A program made the translations under genes and the position numbers. Source: Macrostomum lignano (taxonomy: Eukaryota). Taken from it: DNA of 64,000 nucleotides. Location of the stretch: contig NIVC01000826.1 in NCBI GenBank assembly GCA_002269645.1, positions 41,237 through 105,236 of the forward strand. Reading direction: 5' to 3'. Each line of letters begins with the position of its first letter. Within the stretch, counting starts at the first letter, position 1. The notes beneath the pieces are model-generated. The model did not search any database. It saw only the letters and a list, made by a program, of their open reading frames with translations, and had not been told where the DNA came from. Of this stretch, positions 12,693 to 58,111 are shown one piece after another.

Positions 12693-13576
12693 GGCTTGCT
12701 GTTGGTTTCTGATCGGCCAGGCTATCGGCATTGGCAACTGTGTTTCAGGCTTTAAATAGCCGGGCCGGCTATCCAGGAAGCATCGAGGTTCCGAAGCTGG
12801 ATTCCGGAACTGCGGATCGGCTCTTTCCTGTGGCAGCTCTGCCGCACATCCGTGATGAAGTCAGCAGAGAGGGCTGTGCTCTACCAGCAAGAATCTTTTT
12901 CAAACATTTTGTAAACGGAAAGAAAGCTGTGAGTTTCAGGGGCTTTAGAGAAAGGCAGGAATCAATGGCTCACCTGGGAAGGAAGCTAACGAAATTCGGG
13001 GCATCACTTCCTACAGTGTTCCAGCTGCTAAGCTCTTGCTAGCGCTGAACCGACTTCAGCGATAAATACGAGCCAAGTAAAGCAAGAACCCTGAAGACGC
13101 CAGAGTTTTTCGCTGATAAAGGGCAAAATTCTTACATTTTTGCCGGATGTTAATGCTGCCTCAGAAGTTTGTTTTTAAAAACTTTCTTACTGGCACTGAG
13201 CCAGCCTAGCAAACTTCCAAGCTGATTTTTTACCGGTTTCTCGGAACACAGCTACGAGTAATTCCCCCGCATGATGCAGAGTATACATGTTAGCGTGTAA
13301 ATGCCTTAGCAATCACAATACAGTATTTTAACAGATTAGACGCAAATCTGTGCCTAAAATGTGACCTCGAATAATAAATAGGAAAATTTGCTTATAATCA
13401 AGTAAACATTCAAAGCTAACCTGACAGAATGGTACTGCAAAGAGGAAGAGCTTGCAAATTTTATTCATAAATTTTCTCAAAATAACATCGTGTGTGTAAA
13501 TAAATAAATTTTATTATACTTCGTTTTCATTGTCACTGTTTTTAAAGTAGGCCAGATCAGTTCTGAACTGCAGCAC

Positions 13577-13834
13577 TCAGCCGTGGTGGAAGCGGTAGTT
13601 TGAATGAGTCGGAGCCCTGCTGTTGCCAGTGATGAACCATTTTCGATCTCTCGGAACAGCATCCAAACCGTCCTCAGTCTCCGCCATAGCGTTCAACAGT
13701 TGCTCCGCGACGGACGTGTCAGCATCGTCGGCATCTAGGATTTCCGGTTCCCCCGACGGCCGGCCCTGGGTCTGGGTAGCAGCGAAGCAGGCGACAGCAA
13801 GCAGAACCAGAGCAAACTGCCTCTTGTTGTTCAT
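13577..13834 (-). CDS. 85-aa secreted peptide precursor (signal peptide, acidic pro-region, RK site, mature WFITGNSRAPTHSNYRFHH plus amidation Gly)
   Basis: Hydrophobic signal FALVLLAVACFAATQTQG, D/E-rich spacer, RDRK cleavage site and terminal Gly before the stop. TATAAATA at 13917-13924 upstream and AATAAA near 13510-13515 downstream, both on the minus strand. Confidence 0.75.
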   Translation of the reverse strand: MNNKRQFALVLLAVACFAATQTQGRPSGEPEILDADDADTSVAEQLLNAMAETEDGLDAVPRDRKWFITGNSRAPTHSNYRFHHG

Positions 13835-15596
13835 GGCGTAGGTGATGTCGGAGTTTCTTCACAATTTCGCGATTCGTGACAAATTTTTTTCTGTCAATTT
13901 TGGCCAAACGCCACCTATTTATATGGCAAGGCGATTCGTCCAGTTTTTCGTGTGTAAACTCAATCACGTTTCTGTCGTGCTTTTCTGCATTCGCGCGCGA
14001 GCCTGGCACTCCAGGACAAAAAAGAAGCGATTAATTCCTTGCCTGCATCAGAAAATCAACAGACTTGGCCAAGCACACATTTGCTTTGGTGCTGAGCGCA
14101 AATAAACAGACTCTCTTATGCAGAGCATGAGCAAACATTTTTGTCAATGGCTTCAGTTTGCGCTCATTTCACATTCTCATCAAGTATCGAAGTTTGTATT
14201 TAGCCACTCCAACAATTAACACGTAAACTTGTCTCTCGCCAAGAGTAATTTTCTCAGTCTCATTCTTCTCAAGGAAAGTGTAACTTGTCCGGCCATGGAG
14301 GCTGTGAGTGCATTTGAGATACACGAACTACATTTATAGTAATCTCAAACAGAGTTTACAGGCTAGCAGCTGCAAGCTGCAAATCCAATGGTAAAAATTA
14401 ACTTGATGACGCATCACCAACTCTACTCCTAAGCAATCGTCTTAAGGAAAATAAACTCTTCGAACGAGGCTGAATTGAGGGTTAGTCGTGAAGATCCTTC
14501 ATCTATAATATACACGTAGGAGTTTGATAGCCAGTGAAATAGAACTCACTTTCACTTGCATGTACGCGTTGGCTCATCAAGTGGGAAATAACGAGGTCAG
14601 TGCTATATAAAAACTTTTGCAGTGACCTGGACTTTTGGGCTGGACACCCCTTGAAGGCTCAAATGCAGATTTTAAAAGATGGAGTTTGAATGTCCAGCGT
14701 CGTAGATTGTTCTCCAAAGAGGATCGAAAAACATCAGGGAAAATCTATTCCAACAAGCCCAAGCCGTGCTCCATCTCAGAGGCTGCGGCCTCGCACTGTC
14801 GTCACTTGACGGATGAGGAAGTGCGTCTGGGACGAAGTTCCCGGCAGTCGTTTCTCCTGCCTGGCCGTACCTGAATTTAGTTGAAAGACTCGAATTATAT
14901 TTTTGCTGGTCTTGTGCGTAACGTGGTGCCATAAATACCACCCAACGCAAGCTGCTTGAGATGATGATCGGAATTGCAGAGCAGCACGTAAGTTCAGCTC
15001 CTACCTGCCGGCTGTCTGCCAGAGTCCTTAGGTTGCTAGCCCTGGTTGCTTTCATAGTTGAGGGTCGAGAAAGCTAGGGAATTTACATTGCAAACTTAGA
15101 GGTCGTGGATTCCCAATTAGGTCCGTTAACCAAAGGGTTCAGACAGGGAGAACTAGAGGCTTGAGAGAAGAGGATGACGGAAAAAAATAATTGAGGACTC
15201 TGCTACATCCGGGGTCGGAGGCTGGCAACGCAGGTGTTCGAAATTGTTCAAACTGCACACAGAAGTCACTGCGCAAGAACTTTCAAATAATACAAAGATT
15301 CCGGTCTTTCGACGATATAAAATCTCGAGTACATACCGGTATAAATCACCCCCCTACTCCCCACAACAACAAAAACTATACACACACGCGTGCAAACTGT
15401 GCCAGATTTGTTGGGGAGACCGGTTTTCGTTGAACGAAGTTTTTGTTGCGATACGGAGTCCTCTCTATCTGTTCATAAGAATTTTTGTGATGAGGATCGA
15501 CAGACTTTCAGCTCTGATTTTGCTAAATTCGATCGCATACCTACCTTGATACATGTAGATCGATAGATACCTACCTACCGACAAACCATTTTTTTA

Positions 15597-17394: not shown

Positions 17395-18197
17395 TCATTT
17401 TCAGCTAATCTCGTCCGATAATTTATTTCTTACTATTTGATTCCCAAAAAATGCGAGAGCTCAGATGAGCAGCTAAGCTGAAGGCGGGGGCTGCAGTGGA
17501 CCGAATGGCCAAACATGAGTGCCGTAGTCGATCAATGAATCAATAATTTTGAATCAGAATTCAAGCTGCTGCAGTCATATCATGTTCTTCATCAGTGCTG
17601 ATTCACATGCGTTAGAGGGACAAAGGACGTAGTGTATTATATTAGTATATTTGGCATTGATTGAAGTCATTTAATTTATAAATAGTCAGCGCCAGAAAAA
17701 TATCCTATATACCTTAGGTATATAGACGTCGACTATATAATGACGAGGGACGACTCACCCCTGCAGAGGAGCGCAGAGAGGATAAAATGTACGGAGCCGC
17801 CTGCACAAGAACACGTGCTTAATTGTTAAAGGAATAAGAGAACAAATTAAACAAAAACCACAAACCGGCCACAGGGCCGAAAAAGTCACTCGAAAAAACG
17901 GCCATGCATACACCAAAAGTAAAATTTTTTACTGTGCATTAATTTGGCAAGAAAGAATATCGAATTTTCCTAATTTTTTGAGCGAAAAGTTTTATGAATA
18001 TCGATAGAGCAATAAGAAAGGCACAACATATCAAAAGATGAGCACTGGATCTGCCTCCTATCAAAAGCAATAACAATTTTTGTGCTGAAAAAATAAAAAC
18101 TTCCAATCTCCGTATTTTTCGGAAAAAACTTGCCTTCCAAATTTTTCTAAGAAACGAGCTGGTTTCGGAACCGTCCTTCTACTTAAGTCGTCCTTGA

Positions 18198-19390
18198 ATG
18201 AATCGTGCAGTATATTTACACGAAATAGAATATAAATTCGAAATTCGAATGAATCGTGTAGTATATTTACACGAAATAGAATATAAATTCGAAATTCGAA
18301 TGAATCGTGTAGTATATTTACACGAAATAGAATATAAATTCGAAAGTCGAATGAATCGTGCAGTATATTTACACGAAATAGAATATAAATTCGAAAGTCG
18401 AATGAATCGTGCAGTATATTTACACGAAATAGAATATAAATTCGAAAGTCGAATGAATCGTGCAGTATATTTACACGAAATAGAATATAAATTCGAAAGT
18501 CGAATGAATCGTGCAGTATATTTACACGAAATAGAATATAAATTCGAAAGTCGAATGAATCGTGCAGTATATTTACACGAAATAGAATATAAATTCGAAA
18601 GTCGAATGAATCGTGCAGTATATTTACACGAAATAGAATATAAATTCGAAAGTCGAATGAATCGTGCAGTATATTTACACGAAATAGAATATAAATTCGA
18701 AAGTCGAATGAATCGTGCAGTATATTTACACGAAATAGAATATAAATTCGAAAGTCGAATGAATCGTGTAGTATATTTACACGAAATAGAATATAAATTC
18801 GAAAGTCGAATGAATCGTGCAGTATATTTACACGAAATAGAATATAAATTCGAAAGTCGAATGAATCGTGCAGTATATTTACACGAAATAGAATATAAAT
18901 TCGAAAGTCGAATGAATCGTGCAGTATATTTACACGAAATAGAATATAAATTCGAAAGTCGAATGAATCGTGCAGTATATTTACACGAAATAGAATATAA
19001 ATTCGAAAGTCGAATGAATCGTGCAGTATATTTACACGAAATAGAATATAAATTCGAAAGTCGAATGAATCGTGCAGTATATTTACACGAAATAGAATAT
19101 AAATTCGAAAGTCGAATGAATCGTGCAGTATATTTACACGAAATAGAATATAAATTCGAAAGTCGAATGATTCGTGCAGTATATTTACACGAAATAGAAT
19201 ATAAATTCGAAAGTCGAATGAATCGTGTAGTATATTTACACGAAATAGAATATAAATTCGAAAGTCGAATGAATCGTGTAGTATATTTACACGAAATAGA
19301 ATATAAATTCGAAAGTCGAATGAATCGTGTAGTATATTTACACGAAATAGAATATAAATTCGAAAGTCGAATGAATCGTGTAGTATATTG
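18198..19390 (+). repeat. 51-bp AT-rich minisatellite (ATGAATCGTGCAGTATATTTACACGAAATAGAATATAAATTCGAAAGTCGA), about 23 copies
   Basis: Near-perfect tandem copies. The 400-aa ORF is an artefact of the unit length being divisible by 3. Confidence 0.97.
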
Positions 19391-21445: not shown

Positions 21446-22046
21446 CCTCAGTTTGAGCAAAGCATCTCCCAGATCCTCAGTTTGAGCAAAGCATCTCCCA
21501 GATCCTCAGTTTGAGCAAAGCATCATCTCCCAGATCCTCAGTTTGAGCAAAGCATCTCCCAGATCCTCAGTTTGAGCAAAGCATCTCCCAGATCCTCAGT
21601 TTGAGCAAAGCATCTCCCAGATCCTCAGTTTGAACAAAGCATCTCCCAGATCCTCAGTTTGAGCAAAGCATCTCCCAGATCCTCAGTTTGAGCAAAGCAT
21701 CATCTCCCAGATCCTCAGTTTGAGCAAAGCATCTCCCAGATCCTCAGTTTGAGCAAAGCATCTCCCAGATCCTCAGTTTGAGCAAAGCATCTCCCAGATC
21801 CTCAGTTTGAACAAAGCATCTCCCAGATCCTCAGTTTGAGCAAAGCATCTCCCAGATCCTCAGTTTGAGCAAAGCATCTCCCAGATCCTCAGTTTGAGCA
21901 AAGCATCTCCCAGATCCTCAGTTTGAGTAAAGCATCTCCCAGATCCTCAGTTTGAGCAAAGCATCTCCCAGATCCTCAGTTTGAACAAAGCATCTCCCAG
22001 ATCCTCAGTTTGAGCAAAGCATCTCCCAGATGCTCAGTTTAAGCAA
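21446..22046 (+). repeat. 29-bp minisatellite (CCTCAGTTTGAGCAAAGCATCTCCCAGAT), about 20 copies
   Basis: Direct tandem copies, some with an extra CAT. Confidence 0.95.
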
Positions 22047-22188
22047 AAAAATGACAGGAAGAGGAGCATCCTGCACACCAAACGAAGTCATTTTGGATAA
22101 TTTTAATTCCTTGCTTTGGCAAACAGAAGATTTTGCATCAACTACACAGAGTTATTCGTGTTAGACGTAATTTTTGGTTTCACACCTG

Positions 22189-23231
22189 TCAGATAATGAG
22201 CATTTCGAACTCCATCAGCGAGTAGTAGAATCCGTAGTAGTATTTCCATATGATGCCGTGACCAAACGGACCACCGATGGCGTCAGTGAAGTTCTTGTAC
22301 ACCCCGTTCGGGTGCGTGCTGTAGCAGCCTTGGAACCACCAGCCCCCGGAATAGTTCTCAGCGCAGCTGCTTGAAGAGTCGTCGTGATCGGCGTCCATCG
22401 TGCTGAACTGGCTGCCGGCAGAGTAGGACAGGCTGTCGCCGATGCCGTCGCTGCCCGAGTAGCCCAGCACCTGCAGCCGGTAGTTGTCCGACTCGGGACC
22501 CACGGAGAAGCTGGAGTACTCGGCCCAGTGCTCAGAGTCGTTCCACGCCTTCATCAGGATCCTCAGCTTCCGAGGACCAGAAGCAGTGAGAGCGTGGAGA
22601 GAGTTCAGGCCTGGGTAGACGCGGACGTCATGGCGGTGTTTGTCATTGAAGTCCGAGTTGGAAAAGAAGCGAATGGAGCAGATCTGGGATGCACTCACCG
22701 ATCCAGTAGTTTCCGTCGGGTCCCTCGCCGAACTCGCTCTGGTACTGAGTCCAGTTGCGGTAAAAGTCCACTGAGCCGGACACCCTGTGCTGCACGGTGG
22801 TCCAGCAGTCACTGCCGGCTGTCTGCAAGGTGACACAACAGGTGTGTCAGCTTTTATGCTCTGCGTTAAAGCGTGGCTGTGATGCTGACAAGTCTTGCGG
22901 TATGACTCACCCACACTCGCTGAGCTCCCTTGTTCGCATTGCGGCACTTCCTGCAGTGGCTCAGGCCGAGTCGGCACCTGAAGAGAGCGCACAGGCCGGA
23001 GCTGGCGTTGAACGCGACCAGCTGCACAGCGGAGTCGCTGTTGGCATGCACCGCGCATTCAGAGTCGCTTCGGACAGGCAGCGACCTCACGGCCTCGTAG
23101 TCGGAGAGGCTCTCGAGACTCGACCACCACGGTCGTCCAGAGGAGAAGGCGGCAACGGCTTCGGTCACGTGATGCGGGACTGCAGCGAGCAGCAGCAGCA
23201 GAGCCACTTGACGAGCGGGTTGGAGCTGCAT
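22189..23231 (-). CDS. Secreted FReD-3, about 288 aa; exons 23231-22911, 22822-22699, 22610-22189
   Basis: Signal [19 protein letters not shown]. Exon 2 [37 protein letters not shown]. Exon 3 FSTMDADHD...[21 protein letters not shown]...[11 protein letters not shown]. Confidence 0.92.
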
Positions 23232-24022: not shown

Positions 24023-24710
24023 TGCAGCTGGTAGCGTTGAACGACAGCTCCAGCCTGCGCGCTCACTTCAGGTGCTGCCTGGGCCGGAGCCACTGCAGGA
24101 AGTGCCGCAATGCGAGTGTGGGTAAGTCATTCTGTTAGACAAATTAAGCGTTACACCTGAAAAGCTGTTACCTCTGTCACCTTGCAGACAACCGCCAGTG
24201 ACTGCTGGACAACCGTGCAGCACAGGGTGTCCGGCTCAGTGGACTTTTACCGCAACTGGACTCAGTACCAGAGCGAGTTTGGCGAGGGACCCGACGGAAA
24301 CTACTGGATCGGTGAGTGCATCCCAGATCTGCTCCATTCGCTTCTTTTCCAACTCGGACTTCAATGACAAACACCGCCATGACGTCCGCATCTTCCCAGG
24401 CCTGAACTCTCTCCACGCTCTCACTGCTTCTGGTCCTCGGAAGCTGAGGATCCTGATGAAGGCGTGGAACGACTCTGAGCACTGGGCCGAGTACTCCAGC
24501 TTCTCCGTGGGTCCCGAGTCGGACAACTACCGGCTGAGCGTGTCCGGCTTCTCCGGCAGCGCCGGCATCGGCGACTGTTGTCTAGTCGTCAGCAGTGGCA
24601 TGCAGTTCAGTACGAAGGACGCCGATCACGACACCAACTCTGGGAGCTGCGTGAACACTCATTCTGGCGCCTGGTGGTTTGGCAGCTGCTTCGGCACTCA
24701 CCCGAACGGA
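24023..24710 (+). pseudogene. FReD-4 pseudogene, inverted relative to FReD-3; lacks the 5' part of exon 1 and the last ~30 codons
   Basis: Exon-1 remnant ...HCRKCRN, exon 2 at 24188-24311 and exon 3 from 24400. Homology stops abruptly after THPNG. Confidence 0.85.
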
Positions 24711-26243
24711 CATCACAGAGATCTGCTACCATAGGCTCAGGTCATTATTAGGAGTCTTAAACTGGCTCTCAATACTCGCTGAGGAAGATTGCGATGCTGC
24801 CTCTGAAACTGGCAATGAGCTGACTAAAATATTTTGTTGTAAACCAAAAAGACTAAGTGTGATTATGTTGTAGGGCTGCGGGGCTCTTGGCTTTCTGTCT
24901 AAGAATCTCACTGCTGCAACCAATTTGCTACAAGGTTATCTTTTCGCCTGTGGTTTAATCACAGCACTGCTACCAAAATCTGTTATGGGGAATTAATGGG
25001 ATTCTTGGAATTTCTGAAAGATATGCTAGTTTTATTACTAATAGGAGTAAGCCAATGGTTGCTCCTGGTGGCGTGAGTGTCCGAGCGGCAAGACACTGTC
25101 TATCTATATTTACTGGAATTAGTCCGAGTGAGGGCACGCGGTGGATCAGAGTTGCCTGGGATAAACGCACTAATGGGGAATTTCAATACCTAATGGGTAA
25201 TTTCAGTATCTAATGGGGCATGTCAATATCTAATGGGGAATGCTGACATGGGATACGAAATGGGCCTGATAGGGAAAGAGAATATCTAAGACTTGGGGTA
25301 AGTCGCTAGATATGCGCTACGACTGGGCGGGGGGAAAAGGGAGAGGGAGGGAGGCCTGACTGTACGCTTGACTGGGGAAAGGACCAAGGAATGGAGAACT
25401 CAGTTCTTTCAACGAAGGGGGGGATAGAGAGGAGGTGTTCACCGGGAGGGGAGAAACGGTCGGGGCTTCTAAGGAATATGGGGTTATGGGGGAAAGAAAG
25501 GAGGACTGAAGGCTGACTCAATTCTATTTTTAGAACAAACTGTTCATACTCCAGACTTAGCTAGGAGCAATCGCCAAAAGGAAGAGGCACCAGAAGGATG
25601 CAGAAAAGAAGTGTATTTGCGCGTATATATACTAATTTTACTAAGTATGGCGGACAATTTTAAACAAAAATATATAAAAGAATTTATTAGCAGCAAAGTT
25701 ACAGTATAAAACCAGGTATTTATTTACGTATACTTACTTCCTGATAATGCTAAAATTAATAATGACAAAAACAATGAATTTACGTAAAAAACGAGAAAAG
25801 CTAATGTATTTAGGCAACTTGGTTACTAGTAAGGCAAAAATGAACGACAAAAATATCAGACTTGGTAAAAAAAGAGTTTACAAAAATAGCACTGGCACAA
25901 TTACAAGTTAAACTTTTTTACTGACAATTTACATAATCATGGTTTCAAATGCACTTTGCATTCTACAATATTGGAGAGTACTTTTCCTGAGTTTAAATCT
26001 GAATTATCCTCTCATTGAGACGGCAGAGCAGCTTAGCGGCAAACGCGTCTGACTCTCACGGCAAAGCACAGAGGGTGTCATGCGATTCACATCAAGGAGG
26101 GCCAGCCCCCGAGGCTCAGAGAGTGCACATGCCTGATGATTAGAAAATCGGGGCCGCTGTGTGTGTGAGTGCGGAATGGGGCCTCAACGCTAGGTTTTGG
26201 ATGATGTCACTGAAGTCGCTTCACACAGGTGGTTATAGCTGCG

Positions 26244-27453: not shown

Positions 27454-28502
27454 TTACAGAAGCAGCATCTCGATCTCCTTCAGTGAGTAGTAGAAACCAA
27501 AAGTTTTCCTCCAAATGACTCCCTTTGCAAAAGCACCTCCAATGGCAGCAGATGAGTCTTTGTACTCTCCGTTCGGGTGGGCGCAGTGACAGCTCCTAAA
27601 CCACCAGGCACCTTTATGAGTTGTTGCGCAGTTGTCAGTGCTGGTGTCGTGATCGGCGTCCTTCGTGCTGAACTGCATGCCGTTGTTATTGTCGAGGCAG
27701 TCGCCGATGCCGGCGCTGCCGGAGAAGCCGGACACGCTCAGCCGGTAGTTGTCCGACTCGGGACCCACGGAGAAGCTGGAGTACTCAGCCCAGTGCTCAG
27801 AGTCGTTCCACGCCTTCATCAGGATCCTCAGCTTCCGAGGCCCAGAAGCAGTGAGAGCGTGGAGAGAGTTCAGGCCTGGGAAGATGCGGACGTCATGGCG
27901 GTGTTTGTCATTGAAGTCCGAGTTGGAAAAGGAAGCGAATGGAGCAGATCTGGGATGCACTCACCGATCCAGTAGTTTCCGTCGGGTCCCTCGCCGAACT
28001 CGCTCTGGTACTGAGTCCAGTTGCGGTAAAAGTCCACTGAGCCGGACACCCTGTGCTGCACGGTGGTCCAGCAGTCACTGCCGGCTGTCTGCAAGGTGAC
28101 ACACAGGTGTGTCAGCTTTTCTACTCTGTGTTAAAAGGCTAGCGTGATGCTGACATATCCAACAGAGTGACTCACCCACAGTCGCTGAGCTCCCTTGTTC
28201 GCATTTCGGCACTTCCTGCAGTGGCTCAGGCCCAGGCGACACCTGAAGTGAGCGCACTGACCGGAGCTGGCGTTGAACGCCACCAGCTGCACAGCGGAGT
28301 CGCTGTTGGCAGGGACAATGCATTCGGGCTCATTCTGGACCGAGTGCGACCTCACGGCCTCGTAGTCGGAGAGGCTCTCGAGACTCGACCACCACAGTCG
28401 TCCAGAAGAGAAGGCGGCAGCGGCTTCGGTTACGTGACGTGGGACTGCAGCGAGCAGCAGCAGCAGCAGCAGAGCCACTTGACGACCGGGTTGGAGCTGC
28501 AT
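27454..28502 (-). CDS. Secreted FReD-5, about 290 aa; exons 28502-28176, 28088-27965, 27875-27454
   Basis: Same exon structure as FReD-3. P-domain [35 protein letters not shown]...[11 protein letters not shown]. Confidence 0.92.
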
Positions 28503-29449: not shown

Positions 29450-29935
29450 ATGCAGCTCCAACTCGCTAGTCAAGCCGCTTTGCTGCTGCTCGCGGCTATA
29501 CGGCAACAAGTGACCCCACTGTGCAGCTGGTGACGTTCCAGCTCCGGCCTGCGCGCTCACTTCAGGTGTCGCCTGGGCCTGAGCCACTGCAGGAAGTGCC
29601 GCAATGCGAACAAGGGAGCTCAGCGAGTGTGGGTGATTCACTCAGTCAGATGTGTCAGCATCACAGCCACGCTTTAACGCAGAACAGAAAAGCTGGCACA
29701 CCTGTTGTGTCACCTTGCAGACAGCCCACAGTGACTGCTGGACCACCGTGCAGCACAGGGTGTCCGGCTCAGTGGACTTTTACCGCATCTGTACTTAGTA
29801 CAGGACTGAGAGCTCCAGCTTTTCTGTGGGTCTGTGAGTCCGACAAATACCGGCTGACCGTGCCCGGCTTCTCTTTCAGCGCCGGCACCGGCGACTGTCT
29901 TTCTGTTAACAATGATATGCAGTTCAGTGCGAACT
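29450..29935 (+). pseudogene. FReD-6 pseudogene, head-to-head with FReD-5; internal deletions in exon 1 and across exon 2/exon 3
   Basis: ATG CAG CTC CAA at 29450 is homologous to the FReD-3/5 start. Exon-1 3' part is present. Exon 2 is fused out of frame to mid-exon 3 (GAGTCCGACAAATACCGGCTG). Confidence 0.8.
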
Positions 29936-30074
29936 GCAGGTGTTCTCAGTACAGAAGCCAACGAGAATAATTAGCAAAGGAACGATTCTCTATCGCCCCA
30001 ATACTAACAGCCTCTCTCATGAGCTTGTAGCGTACGCCACCACTCAAGCATTTTGCTCCCTAATAGTCTCTCCC

Positions 30075-36147: not shown

Positions 36148-39100
36148 TGTTAAGTTATTGACAAGAGTCAGTGTGTAAGGCTAGTCAAAAACTCTTATGG
36201 CTCCAACTGGCCCAGCCCCGACTTATATATTTAACTAAGCGAGCGATGTACATTGTAGAACGTACACAAAGCCAGTGCGCATAAATAAAGCATTTTAGCA
36301 TTATTGAATGGATGGATTGAGCTCTCAGTAAAACCAAATCACCCGATACCGATACACAATGCAATACACAACATCTCCTTTACGAAAGTTATTTGTTCGA
36401 AAACGATCTAAATAAAACAGCATTGGTGCGAACTTATATCTCTGAAAAAGGTATTAAAAACGAAACATTGAACAGATACTGTATGGGCATGGCAGGATAA
36501 AAAAACAAAAATCATATTTGTCATTAGGTTAGTAAGTCATGCAATCCGAGATATTAGATGAACACAGAAAGTATTACAATATTATGGCCGAATGCTAAAA
36601 GCTGGTTTTTTTAGATGCTTAAAAAGTTTAAGTTAGCTCAAGAATAACTGCTACATCAAGTGACAGTCACCAGCAACTTACAGTACTCAGGCTGCCTGGT
36701 AATACTCAGGAGTCTTGACAGCTCGGCCACGCATGGTCCGATAAGGCCCATCTCGCTGGAGGCCGGAGGCCGGCTGCACGGAGGCCGGCTGCACGGAGGC
36801 CGGCTGCACGGAGGCCGGCTGCACGGAGGCCGGCTGACAATCTCCCTGCTCGTCCTCTTCGCTGCTCTGTAGGAATTCACCGACTGTCACACCAATCTTC
36901 CGAGGCCTGATGAAGCGGCGGTTCCGTCTGAGCAACTGTCCAGTCTCAGTTCGAACCCAGTACGACCTTGGGGAGTTCTCGCACTCGCTATCAATCTCAG
37001 CTGCCACCCACTCGCGACGTCCGCGTTGTAACCACACCAGATCACCAAATGCTAGCTTCTGCAACGGTCGAGCTCCGCGATTGTACAGCTGCGCTGCTCT
37101 AATGCGCTCTTTTTGAAAAGCCTCAATGCAGGAGTGAAGATGAATTTCCTTTGGCCGCAAGTCCTTGACAGTCGCTGGCAGGTCACATCGAAGCTTACGG
37201 CCGAAAGCCATCTCCGCCGGGCTTGGAAAGCCGCTGCCGACCGGAGTGTTGCGGTAGTGAAGCAGTGCCAACTCCAGACTTTGGCCTGTCTCGGAGCATT
37301 TCTTCAACATGTTTTTAGCTGTCTGTACGTAGCGCTCAGCTCTCCCGTTCGACTGCGGGTACGCTGGACTCGAGGTTCGGTGCTCCACCTTGAATTCAGC
37401 CATTGTCTGTCGAAACTCGCGAGCAGAAAACTGCGGGCCTCCATCACTGACTAGCTTCTCTGGCACTCCAAAGCTTTGAAAATGATCCCGTATCACATTC
37501 GCCACAGCCAATCTTGTGGTTGATCTCATCCGTGTGACACTCATCCAGCGGCTGTAGGAGTCAACGTACACCAAGTAGGATCCACCAGTGAACTCAAATA
37601 GATCAGTCGAACAGACTTGGAACGGAAAATCCGGCATATTCACAGACATCAGCGTTTCTTTGGACTGAGTCCTCATATTGCGCTGGCATGACTCGCATTC
37701 ACTAACGACCTGCTCTACGCAGTTCCGCATTCCTGGCCAGTAGAAATAGTCCTTGGCCTTCAAGTCCATTTTCACGATGCCAGGGTGCCCCGCATGTAGA
37801 ATTTTGAGCACAGATTTCCGGGCGTGGCCTTCAGGCATAGAAGACCGGAGGCATACGTCAAGTCATTTCGGATATCCCAAAAAGGCTTCAGATCATCTGA
37901 CAACTTCGACCGACGCTCTGGCCAACCCTCCTGGATGACAGTTCGCAACCGCTCACTAGTCGCATCTTCTGCTGTCGCAGTCTTTATCATCTGCAAGATT
38001 TCTCGATCACCACTAAAGCAGCGTTCCACCGATAAAACTTGGTCGTCAAGCGCAGTCTCAAGCTGAATAGTGAGAAGATCAGCTGCACCGTGAGCTCGAC
38101 TTAAAGTGTCGGCTACATAAAGGTCTTTGCCTTGCGTGTACTTCACGCGGATGTCATAAGGCTGCAACTGAAGCAGGAGTCGCTGAATTCGAGGAGTAGT
38201 GTCGCACAAAGCCTTTTTAAAGATCGATTCAAGTGGCTTGTGATCGCTTTGCACTTGCACCGTACGACCCCAGATATAACGATGGAATTTTTTTGCAACC
38301 ATAGACGATGGCCAAAAGCTCTTTCTCAATCTGCGCGTACGCGCGCTGAGCACTTGTCATAGCCGAGGACGCGTATTCGACGGGGCGATCCTCTTGAAGC
38401 AGCACTGCGCCGATGCCACTCTTGCTTGCGTCAACTGAGACTGTGACAGGCTTGTTGGTGTCAAACGTGGCTAACACTCGGCTTGAGCATAGTTCCGTGA
38501 CGATCTCATCATACGCTTGGTCGTGTTGATCCACCCAGCTCCATATAACCTCTTTCTTCAGCAGGTGTCTCAGTGGCTCTGCTGTGGCAGACAAGTGTGG
38601 GCAGAATCTGGCCAAGTACGTGACGCAGCCAAGAAACCGCCTCAACTGTTCTTTCTTTGCTGTCACGCCTTCAAGAGAATCGGGTCTTGCCATCTCTTTG
38701 ATCGCTTTAACCTTCTGGGGATCAGCCCTCAGTCCATCTGGTCCGAGAATGTCCCCTAAATAGTTTAGCTCTGGGACTCCAACTTTCACCTTGCTGGGAT
38801 TCAGCGTCACGTTTGCACGCTTGCACTGCTCCATTAGCTGGCGCACCGCCGTATCGTGCTCCTCGATCGTGCGTCCCCACACAATAATATCATCGAAGAA
38901 GTTTTTAGCGTTTTCCACATGGCTGGTAACATTTTTTTCCATGCGTTTCTGAAACACTTCTGGGATCGAAGATAGGCCATACGGCACACGCTTCCACCTG
39001 TATCGACCAAACGGAGTGTGGAAAGTGGTAAGGAACGAACTCTTCTCATCTAGCTTAAGCTGGTGAAAGCTCTCGTTTGTGTTAAATGTGCTAAATACAG

Positions 39101-40980
39101 CGGCTCCAGCAGTTGCCATGCGGACCTCCTCAGCTGTTGGGATTGGGTGATACTCGCGCACAATGAACTGATTCAGATATGTCGGATCCAGGCAAAGACG
39201 CATCGAGCCGTCTCTCTTCCAAACAATGGTGACGTTTGACACCCACTGAGTTGGTTCATCAACCTGGACAATGGTTCCTTTTTTTTCGAGACGCTCTAGC
39301 TCGCACTTCAGTGGCTGATAGGCAGCAAATGGGACCTTCCGTGGTGGCTGGACTTTTGGGACGGCATTTTCAGTCAACTGAATGCTGTACTGCTGTTTCA
39401 TGCACCCAACACCCTTGAAAACGGTTGGATAGTCTGTAAAAAGTTGACTCGAAGTAATCTGAGACTTCTCTACTTTGGTTAGGCTGAGTTGGCTCTTGTC
39501 TATGGCAAAAAGCTTCTTGATGAGTTTTAGCTCATGGAGCGCTGACCTCCAGCCTATTATCGGGGTGGAGTTTTCTCCGACAACTACGAACTGCAGCCTT
39601 TTGTTTTTCTGGCATGGTGAAGACACAGTCAGATATGTCAGTCCAACAACATCTAGCTGCTGTCCGTTGTACGTAGTGAGCATCCATGTCGTGGGCTCGA
39701 TTTTTGCCGATGGAGAAAAACGGGTTAGGCTGCGCAGTGGAATTACATTTACATCTGCTCCCGTGTCAACTTTAAACTGAAGGGCTTTACCCGAATCTTC
39801 TGTTGACAGACTCACCATCATTGTTGAGTGGCCATGCAGAGGCTCAGCTTCCGGTGTCTCAACTGTCATTACTGTCGCTGGGTCTGGTTCTTGATCAAAG
39901 CCTGGCTTGTCCTGTTGATTTTTTTCTTGGAGTTCGTTGACCCTCTTCGAAGACCGGCACGCTGACGCAAAGTGATTCAGTCGTCCACAGCTGCTGCACT
40001 TCTTTCCGTAGGCCGGGCACTTCCTCCGCTCGTGTTGCATAGAGCAGTAGCCACAGCTAGGCCTTGAGGTTGGACCTGAGGATCTAGCTGGTGCCTTGGT
40101 TCGGCCTTGGAGAGCGTCAACAGACACAGCAGGGGGTGCTCGGCTGCCGTGAGCTATGGCCAGAGAAATCGCCTGTCGCTTCGACGTCTCTGAAGCCCTA
40201 CCCATTTGAATAGCGCGGTTGAGATTCAGGTTTTTCTCTCTCAGAAGTCTCTCCTTCAGCGCCGGATCGCTGACTCCTATAACAATCTGGTCGCGGATGA
40301 CGCTATCGCTGACTGTCTCGCCGTTGGCCGGTGTTTCGTAATTGCACCTAGTAACGAGCTGTCGAAGGGAGGCTACGAACTGATCGAAGTCCTCCGACTC
40401 AGCCTGAGTTCTGGTTCTCAACAGGTAGCGATCGAAAGTTTCGTTGCAAAGCGGCTCGCAGTAGTCCTTGAATTGCTTGATTACGTTGTCGTATGTTTTC
40501 ACCTCCTCTGTGGGAAATGTTGAGTACACTTCTTGGCCTTCCGGTCCAAGTGCAGTTAGCAGTATTGCGATCTTAACCTCTTCGCTTTTTTCTGTCTTTT
40601 TTGTAGCCTTCATATAAAAGTCCATCGCCTTGCTCCATCTTCTCCAATTGTCTGCTCGATTGGTGTCGAACACCATCGGCTCTGGAGGCCTCAGTCCTTC
40701 CATTGCTTTGGTAGCTAGTTGAAAATAGAAAGTACTTTTATGCTTGCGACGCCATGTTAAGTTATTGACAAGAGTCAGTGTGTAAGGCTAGTCAAAAACT
40801 CTTATGGCTCCAACTGGCCCAGCCCCGACTTATATATTTAACTAAGCGAGCGATGTACATTGTAGAACGTACACAAAGCCAGTGCGCATAAATAAAACAT
40901 TTTAGCATTATTGAATGGATGGATTGAGCTCTCAGTAAAACCAAATCACCCGATACCGATACACAATGCAATACACAACA
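36148..40980 (-). mobile_element. Full-length Ty3/Gypsy LTR retrotransposon (Mag-like), 4833 bp; LTRs 36148-36373 and 40755-40980
   Basis: The 226-bp LTRs are TG...CA and I see one mismatch between them. 5-bp TSD AGTCT. PBS TGGCGTCGCAAGCA at 40754-40741 and PPT AAAGGAGA. Domain order is gag-PR-RT-RH-IN. Confidence 0.97.
36687..40703 (-). pseudogene. Gag-Pol polyprotein of the Gypsy element, interrupted by two frameshifts (about 38290 and about 37840)
   Basis: CCHC knuckle CSSCGRLNHFASAC, protease VDTGADV, RT FFDD, RNase H VDASKSGIGAVL and YAQIEKELLA, integrase HAGH...CESC with D(STDLF), D(VSDGG), E(AERYV). Extra base in the homopolymer at 38288-38294 and a short deletion before MPEGHARKSV. 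Confidence 0.93.
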
Positions 40981-45119: not shown

Positions 45120-46354
45120 ATGGCGGTGCATCACGTGAGCCTGCGCCGCCCGGACCCGTCCTACTCGTGGGGCTTCCGTCTGCAGGGCGGCATCGACTAC
45201 CAGCTGCCGCTGAGTGTCGAGAGCGTCGCTCCGGGCACCGTGGCCGACCGTTGCGGCCTCGTACGCGGCGACTTCGTCGTTGGCATCAACGGCCAGCCAA
45301 CGGACTACCTGCAGCACGAGGCCGCCAAGATGGCCATCATTCGGTCAGGCAACGAGGTGGCCCTCACTGTGCACCGCGGCAGCGGAGGCGGTGGAGGCGG
45401 GGGAGGCGGGGGAGGCGGCGTAGCTATCTACGATGACTATGAAGGCAGCGGAGGCGGCGGTGGTGGCGGAGGCGGCGGTGGGGTGAACGTCTGGAGGCCG
45501 TCTGTGCAGTCGGTGACGCAGCTCTACCAGCAGCACCAGCAGCAGCGGCAGCAGCAGCAGCAGCAGCAGCACCATGCCCCAGCCGCTAGACCCAGCGGTG
45601 TGGGAAGATTTCCCGCCGGCAGCGGCAGCATGTTCGCCGACCTGCCCAAGGTCAGTGAGAGCTGAATAGAAGTGGCACTTGGGTAGCAGTTAGTGCAACT
45701 GCTCATGATAATTATGAGTAGCAACCCCAAGGGCGGCCTGCCACGTAGTCAAGGTGTGAGCTCGAGCGCTCGCTCAAGGTTCAGCGGGTCGGCCCTGTTG
45801 CTTTGATTGATAAACTCGGACGAATTAAAAGTACATTTCCTCCACATCAATTCGCGCAGGTGACGAACACGTCATTGGCGGCGAACAAAACGGACACGAA
45901 CGTCCGTCACTACGACAACAACTACAACAGCAGCCCGAGGCCGTTCACTCCGCACGGATACGCCTACGGCCCGGCTGCTGCACAGCGTCATCACCGAGGC
46001 GGCGGCGGCGGCGGCACCAGCAACAGCTTCCACCAGCAGCAGCCGCACAGCCCGCACCTGCAAGACTCCACCAACGTGGCTTCAAGCCACGGCTATCGGC
46101 AGGTCCGCCCGCCGGAGCCCGGCGTGCCCCGGCCAGCGCCCGGCGGCGGCGGCGGCGGCGGTTTGATTTGCGCCGCGTGCGGCGAACTCGTCCGCGGCGT
46201 CTTCGTCAACGTCCAGGGCCGGCTGCCGATGCACCCGGAGTGCTTGAAGTGCGCCGCCTGCGGCGTTGGCCTGCGCCACTGCGGCTATTACTGCGTAGAG
46301 GACCGCGTCTTCTGCGAGGCCCACGCCAGGGCGGCCACTGCCGGCGGTCTGTGA
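45120..46354 (+). CDS. PDLIM: PDZ and LIM domain protein (ALP/Zasp-type: PDZ, ZM-like motif, single LIM), about 341 aa; exons 45120-45650, 45860-46354
   Basis: PDZ SWGFRLQGGIDYQLPLSVESVAPGTVADRCGL.RGD.VVGING. Motif VRHYDNNYNSSPRPF. LIM CAAC...HPECLKCAAC...FCEAH. Phase-0 GT-AG intron. Confidence 0.88.

Positions 46355-49986: not shown

Positions 49987-58111
<8,125 letters not shown>

Follow-up and report, generated by a model that had tools for sequence, protein, structure and literature searches.

What does a small open reading frame (ORF) lying among fibrinogen-like genes of the flatworm Macrostomum lignano encode, and is it a gene at all? The question is raised by a stretch of 64,000 nucleotides of contig NIVC01000826.1 in assembly GCA_002269645.1 (hereafter the window, meaning the whole stretch of DNA that was analysed), in which a first-pass annotation had singled out an 85-aa ORF as an orphan amidated-peptide precursor within a lectin cluster and had proposed that it encodes a new neuropeptide or host-defence peptide. 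Our bioinformatics analyses establish that the ORF is a real, small, single-exon M. lignano gene for a secreted-type precursor, and tentatively point toward a lineage-restricted prepropeptide from which one amidated signalling peptide would be released. The ORF runs on the minus strand from an ATG at 13834 to a TGA at 13577, and its product is MNNKRQFALVLLAVACFAATQTQGRPSGEPEILDADDADTSVAEQLLNAMAETEDGLDAVPRDRKWFITGNSRAPTHSNYRFHHG. The elements named in the first-pass annotation, i.e. the single exon, TATA box, AATAAA, signal peptide, acidic spacer, RDRK and Gly-stop, were all located, at the following window positions:

13577..13834, minus strand: complete coding sequence (CDS), a single coding exon of 85 aa plus TGA, based on a contiguous deposited model, codon-position GC and the substitution pattern.
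13916..13923, minus strand: TATA box TATAAATA, 89 nt 5' of the ATG, the same in 3/3 genomic copies.
13835..13873, minus strand: inferred minimum 5' untranslated region, from the start of the deposited model of the genomic copy L003 (introduced below), 39 nt 5' of the ATG.
13510..13515, minus strand: poly(A) signal AATAAA, 62 nt 3' of the stop, kept in 3/3 copies.
13460..13465, minus strand: second AATAAA, 112 nt 3' of the stop.
13763..13834, minus strand: signal peptide, residues 1-24 (MNNKRQ / FALVLLAVACFAA / TQTQG), with a predicted cut at TQG/RP, from a heuristic analysis of the n-, h- and c-regions and of positions -3/-1.
13652..13762, minus strand: acidic pro-region, residues 25-61, net charge -10, pI 4.05.
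13640..13651, minus strand: R-D-R-K, residues 62-65, the sole match to the basic cleavage motif.
13583..13639, minus strand: predicted mature 19-mer WFITGNSRAPTHSNYRFHH, a basic and aromatic tail that reads ...RFYH in L003.
13577..13582, minus strand: C-terminal Gly codon (putative amide donor) and stop, GGC TGA.

Length by itself is uninformative, because the window contains many ORFs of this size. The peptide ORF was therefore set against all 130 ATG-initiated ORFs of 50-200 aa on both strands, using a simple signal-peptide rule and the presence, no more than 150 nt away, of a TATA box on the 5' side and a poly(A) signal on the 3' side. The signal-peptide rule was passed by six of the 130, three of which are genuine first exons of secreted fibrinogen-related-domain (FReD) genes, and the peptide ORF alone combined all three signals. 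Its GC content at codon positions 1/2/3 (0.60/0.45/0.65) resembles that of the neighbouring real exons, and its flanks have 38-42% GC. When the genomic copies are compared, synonymous changes make up a larger share of the substitutions in the annotated frame (5/12) than in any of the other five, and the sole indel removes one whole codon. The reading frame of the window copy is closed by a TGA nine codons 5' of the ATG, indicating that the ATG opening the signal peptide is the true start. Two overlapping ORFs, 13623-13841 on the plus strand and 13719-14009 on the minus strand, were judged spurious on account of stop codons in the opposite strand and other frames and of their lower synonymous share. 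An Rfam scan of the whole window returned no RNA family.

GenBank already lists three copies of the protein under the label 'hypothetical protein' (gene names BOX15_Mlig034053g1, BOX15_Mlig008899g1 and that of a third copy), and its UniProt name is 'Secreted protein'. The three genomic copies compared here are as follows:

L001: the window copy, reference for differences.
L002: Mlig034053.g1, one amino-acid difference from L001.
L003: Mlig008899.g1, seven substitutions and one deleted residue relative to L001.

All three are intact, each retaining the frame, the basic site and the Gly-stop. The deposited model of L003 (PAA76349.1, 'partial', 97 aa) begins 39 nt 5' of the ATG and downstream of the TATA box, as the end of a transcript would. 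The sole source of the GenBank annotation of this assembly was a set of transcripts derived from RNA-seq, which were filtered by expression and given ORFs by TransDecoder (PMC5730564), and because the gene models of this annotation have no other origin we infer that a transcript exists; the lack of a transcript, which the first-pass annotation had named as grounds for abandoning its proposal, thus does not apply. The gene is new to characterisation although already deposited, and it is an ordinary gene of a familiar kind.

The precursor has the layout MNNKRQFALVLLAVACFAATQTQG / RPSGEPEILDADDADTSVAEQLLNAMAETEDGLDAVP / RDRK / WFITGNSRAPTHSNYRFHH / G. The signal peptide, recognised heuristically, has an n-region of charge +2, an h-region of 13 uncharged hydrophobic residues and a c-region with small residues at -3 and -1, and AlphaFold2 (AF2) places a helix over its residues 3-21. 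Downstream of it there is no Cys. With the basic-residue cleavage motif defined as K/R-Xn-K/R (n=0, 2, 4 or 6), Lys65 is the only residue of the precursor that satisfies it, the other flank of the peptide being the Gly-stop. The site reads K-D-R-K in L003, and since the change there is R to K, the P4 position is still basic. The terminal Gly is already exposed at the stop and would be available to peptidylglycine alpha-amidating monooxygenase (PAM) without trimming; the predicted [M+H]+ of the 19-mer is 2327.133 in the amidated and 2385.138 in the Gly-extended form, and 2353.137 for the amidated L003 variant. Charge is strictly segregated, from -10 in the pro-region to +2 to +4 in the tail, whose last 20 residues lack acidic side chains and have a net charge of +2.0 at pH 7 and +4.3 at pH 5.5 before the amide is added, the rise toward pH 5.5 being due to three His. 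The predicted 19-mer is hydrophilic (grand average of hydropathy, GRAVY, -1.10; mean Eisenberg hydrophobicity -0.12), with Gly and Pro inside it and a low helical hydrophobic moment (muH at 100 degrees, 0.23). Run on the single sequence, AF2 gave no globular fold (mean predicted local distance difference test score, pLDDT, 56.7; predicted template modelling score, pTM, 0.24), with a low-confidence helix at residues 40-51 of the pro-region and the tail in coil. The sequence elements, together with the reality of the gene, bear out the prepropeptide layout that the first-pass annotation had described.

The orphan status claimed for the gene was borne out as well. A word-indexed search of 5.8 billion protein clusters and an exhaustive phmmer search of 1.84 billion representative proteins each returned only the gene's own cluster, no Pfam-A family matched the precursor at E<=10, and tblastn and blastn, run on the window and on the 54 kb of the three loci, detected neither a second copy nor a decayed one. 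Orphan here means that no relative occurs in annotated proteomes, those of other flatworms included, and does not imply specificity to M. lignano; as far as can be seen from sequence comparison, the gene appears restricted to Macrostomum. No peptide similar to the mature motif occurs in planarian or schistosome lists, and literature matches to it such as 'CHHamide' were rejected as irrelevant.

How, then, does the precursor compare with known peptide systems? Planarian prohormones have been recognised as proteins shorter than 200 aa that begin with a signal sequence, carry a basic cleavage site next to the peptide and bear no resemblance to other annotated genes (PMC2953531), and the M. lignano product has a heuristically predicted signal sequence, a flanking basic site, 85 aa and neither family nor homologue. 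It resembles the spp and npp prohormones of Schmidtea mediterranea (PMC2953531) in being short, in its signal peptide, flanking basic site and Gly amide donor, and in a taxonomic restriction that is often seen among them at the level of flatworms; it differs in lacking sequence similarity, in its single peptide at the extreme C-terminus, in R-K instead of K-R and in its His-His-Gly end. A PC2-type processing enzyme is present in M. lignano, whose peptide is predicted from the gene. With the flatworm RFamide/FMRFamide-like peptides and NPY/NPF it shares an aromatic-Arg-Phe motif (N-Y-R-F) near the C-terminus of a basic peptide. However, it ends in ...Y-R-F-H-H-G-stop (...R-F-Y-H-G in L003) rather than in R-F-G followed by a basic residue or stop as in the RFamide and FMRFamide-like (FLP) peptides, and because R-F is followed by H-H-G no RFamide can come from this precursor. 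In the NPY/NPF family the Arg codon that precedes the terminal aromatic residue is split by a conserved intron (PMC2953531). NPY/NPF identity was rejected: the peptide has 19 aa instead of about 36-40, does not end in R-x-R-F/Y-Gly-basic, and its CDS has no intron. In layout, the precursor is prohormone-like and, judged by its predicted features, falls outside every named family.

We tentatively favour, at somewhat less than an even chance, a lineage-restricted prepropeptide whose cleavage after RDRK and subsequent amidation would yield WFITGNSRAPTHSNYRFHH-NH2, a putative signalling peptide. In this scheme the signal peptide would be removed after Gly24, and the 61-residue pro-form would enter the regulated secretory pathway, the acidic spacer neutralising the basic tail in transit. 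A PC2-type convertase would then cleave after R-D-R-K65 and PAM would turn the terminal Gly85 into the amide; these processing and amidation steps are all predictions from the encoded precursor. The WFITGNSRAPTHSNYRFHH-NH2 thus released would be an extracellular signal from a neuronal, endocrine or sub-epidermal secretory cell, most likely acting through a receptor; being hydrophilic and non-amphipathic, the tail suits a receptor ligand better than a membrane-active peptide. M. lignano has a PC2 homologue that is expressed in the nervous system and whose knock-down is lethal (PMC4490696).

The copies also offer a view of how the gene diverges. Between L001 and L003 the CDS differs by 12 substitutions, seven of them non-synonymous and five synonymous, and its divergence of 4.7% compares with 2.6% in the flanks (p=0.07). 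The transcribed region is a local divergence peak between the homeologous copies, with 30 mismatches in ~600 bp against 0-8 per 200 bp nearby. The acidic pro-region carries 4/7 of the amino-acid substitutions between L001 and L003; counting the one-residue deletion, seven of the eight amino-acid changes fall in the signal peptide and pro-region. A variable spacer and a conserved peptide would be the direction expected of a neuropeptide, but these data have no statistical power. Over the 200 bp 5' of the TATA box (13924-14124), L001 and L003 have the same sequence and L002 stands out at 5 sites; in the stretch that runs from the TATA box across the CDS to 1.1 kb beyond it, L003 differs from the other two at 39 sites. 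This switch of the odd copy from L002 to L003 places a recombination or gene-conversion breakpoint near the TATA box (position 9711-10000 of the loci). Promoter constraint on these 200 bp was rejected, the pattern being that of a recombination or gene-conversion mosaic.

Several observations weigh against a processed, amidated signalling peptide. Convertase sites with Lys at P1 (R-K) are less favoured than K-R or R-R. The precursor has a single basic site and a single peptide, with no repeated copies to corroborate processing. The -His-His-amide end belongs to no known peptide family, its motif was not found in the literature searched, and the penultimate residue of the tail varies between copies (H or Y). 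The 1/8 amino-acid changes in the last 20 residues, this same H to Y change, is a non-significant deficit among near-identical copies (p=0.39). The pN and pS between L001 and L003 (0.037 and 0.082, ratio 0.44) do not reject neutrality (p=0.14), with 12 substitutions only, and the pN is 4-6 times higher than that of the adjacent FReD exons (0.006-0.010). As for the site of expression, the gene identifiers had no match in the full text and the supplements of M. lignano papers that were searched.

Some of these observations would fit other readings better. A fast-evolving exocrine gland product (prostate or seminal fluid, pharyngeal, cement, epidermal or adhesive-organ-associated), released outside the animal or into the partner, whether processed or not, with no internal signalling, seems to us rather unlikely but a serious contender. 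The gene is taxonomically restricted, short, TATA-driven and single-exon, its transcribed region is the local divergence peak and its pN exceeds that of the neighbouring FReD exons, all of which such a product would share. Macrostomum transcripts that are related to reproduction or limited to glands are reported to evolve fast and to be often lineage-specific (PMC7336406, PMC8662610, PMC5977470), and in planarians 'prohormone' genes are also expressed in adhesive glands, the intestine and sub-epidermal cells (PMC2953531). On the other hand, the combination of a Gly-stop, one basic cluster, no Cys and strictly segregated charge characterises processed peptides more than it does bulk gland proteins, and neither the identifiers nor the sequence strings occur in the supplements of the seminal-fluid screen and the three-species reproduction study, an absence that weighs little because those files may use other transcript names. 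It is improbable, in our estimation, that the gene is instead a transcribed ORF of recent, possibly de novo origin for which no function has yet been selected and whose propeptide-like features are fortuitous. That no homologue was detected, and that the window and the three loci contain neither paralogue nor remnant, would be expected of such an ORF, as would the failure to reject neutrality and the lack of a predicted fold, but its signal peptide, TATA and poly(A) geometry is unique among the 130 ORFs, its codon-position GC is exon-like and distinct from the AT-richer flanks, the frame, basic site and Gly-stop are kept in three copies with a one-codon indel as the only length change, and the gene passed the expression filter of the annotation.

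A host-defence role was the other half of the first-pass proposal, and it would take the form of an antimicrobial precursor tied to the FReD pattern-recognition genes, in which low pH or metal activates a cationic His/Arg-rich peptide otherwise masked by the acidic pro-piece. Many antimicrobial-peptide precursors consist of a signal, an anionic spacer, a basic site and a cationic amidated tail; frog dermaseptin-type precursors and the His-rich clavanins of tunicates are examples of cationic antimicrobials with an anionic pro-piece. The M. lignano precursor shares with these a signal peptide followed by an acidic spacer and a basic site, and a cationic peptide that may be amidated and whose charge depends on pH through its His residues (+2 at pH 7 to +4.3 at pH 5.5), and its gene sits among five or six FReD loci. 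In contrast to them, its tail is hydrophilic and non-amphipathic, it has no similarity to their families, and the copies vary in the pro-region rather than in the mature part, which is usually hypervariable in antimicrobial-peptide and toxin families. Among the attributes of linear cationic antimicrobials, net positive charge is present, and a substantial hydrophobic content and an amphipathic helix or strand are absent (GRAVY and hydrophobic moment as above, Gly/Pro interruptions, AF2 coil). The peptide gene, moreover, lies outside the duplicated FReD unit and has no sequence in common with the FReD promoters or the rest of the window. We consider this reading very improbable: of the two alternatives in the first-pass annotation, a neuropeptide or a host-defence peptide, the shared precursor layout holds up, and the hydrophilic tail, its moment of 0.23 and its Gly and Pro speak against a membrane-active antimicrobial.

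Returning to an amidated signalling peptide, a bolder version of it would make the gene the founder of a signalling-peptide family that arose recently, is confined to Macrostomum and has an unprecedented -Arg-Phe-His-His-NH2 end; this we hold to be a long shot. For such a family the end may be metal-binding or pH-sensing, and candidate receptors would be a G protein-coupled receptor (GPCR) or a peptide-gated DEG/ENaC channel, a type for which the window has a gene 8 kb away. Some invertebrate DEG/ENaC channels are gated by amidated peptides.

The genomic neighbourhood raises the further question of whether the peptide gene belongs functionally with the genes around it. Its position inside the 'lectin' cluster could be confirmed, exons with a Fibrinogen_C domain (PF00147) flanking it on both sides, and the 'lectins' are FReD genes, whose products would be lectins by their family. 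The exons are:

7281-7778: Fibrinogen_C exon.
11484-11882: Fibrinogen_C exon.
22189-23058: Fibrinogen_C exon.
24198-24734: Fibrinogen_C exon.
27454-27960: Fibrinogen_C exon.

The nearest FReD gene lies on the same strand ~840 bp downstream of the peptide gene, with its start at 12737 and its own TATTTAAA. The duplicated FReD unit stops near 12875, leaving the peptide gene outside, and the peptide locus (13000-14600) matches nothing in the rest of the window, FReD promoters included. Because of this lack of shared sequence and the position outside the duplicated unit, the co-location with FReD genes carries no functional weight. Although the co-location is real, the sequence gives no sign of common regulatory elements or of a common origin.

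Within the FReD cluster itself, the tandem genes at 7277-8746 and 11481-12875 (minus strand) are 99.2% identical over 482 bp of their 5' exon segment (8265-8746 versus 12394-12875) and only 78% identical in their Fibrinogen_C exon, which suggests gene conversion or a partial re-duplication of the 5' exon. The product of the Cys-rich N-terminal FReD exon (12303-12737) has no Pfam match. An ORF at 29521-29970 on the plus strand is similar to FReD genes in their N-terminal and linker part, has no Pfam match and a truncated domain, and may be a FReD pseudogene or fragment. Four regular tandem arrays lie among the FReD genes (6569-7205, 9316-10293, 18196-19389 and 21446-22047), with periods of 24, 46, 51 and 29 bp, 21-27 copies and 93-99% matches, and are a source of long spurious ORFs. 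The remaining features of the window are:

2675-5695, minus strand: DEG/ENaC gene (amiloride-sensitive sodium channel, PF00858), lying ~8 kb from the peptide gene and split over at least three ORF pieces.
36687-40703, minus strand: long terminal repeat (LTR) retrotransposon pol, whose two or three overlapping ORFs encode reverse transcriptase, RNase H and integrase domains.
45120-46354, plus strand: gene with PDZ and LIM domains.
51782-52717, plus strand: catalytic exon of a 3'5'-cyclic nucleotide phosphodiesterase.

No record of the exact LTR-retrotransposon pol product occurs in the contig index, and the second half of the window contains many low-complexity repeat ORFs.

What the gene means for the biology of M. 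lignano depends on the fate of its product. The findings on the peptide gene leave the understanding of neuropeptides and of FReD proteins unchanged. As a gland product it would be of local interest only, one more of the fast-evolving orphan secreted proteins in which Macrostomum abounds. As far as the searched literature shows, no M. lignano peptidome has been published. Provided that the 19-mer is produced and amidated, a flatworm model amenable to transgenesis and RNAi would gain a lineage-specific signalling peptide, and the gene, with its single exon, one peptide and fast-evolving spacer, would be a clean example of a young peptide-hormone gene. Should it also be the founder of its own family, it would represent a neuropeptide born after the split of this lineage from all other sequenced flatworms.

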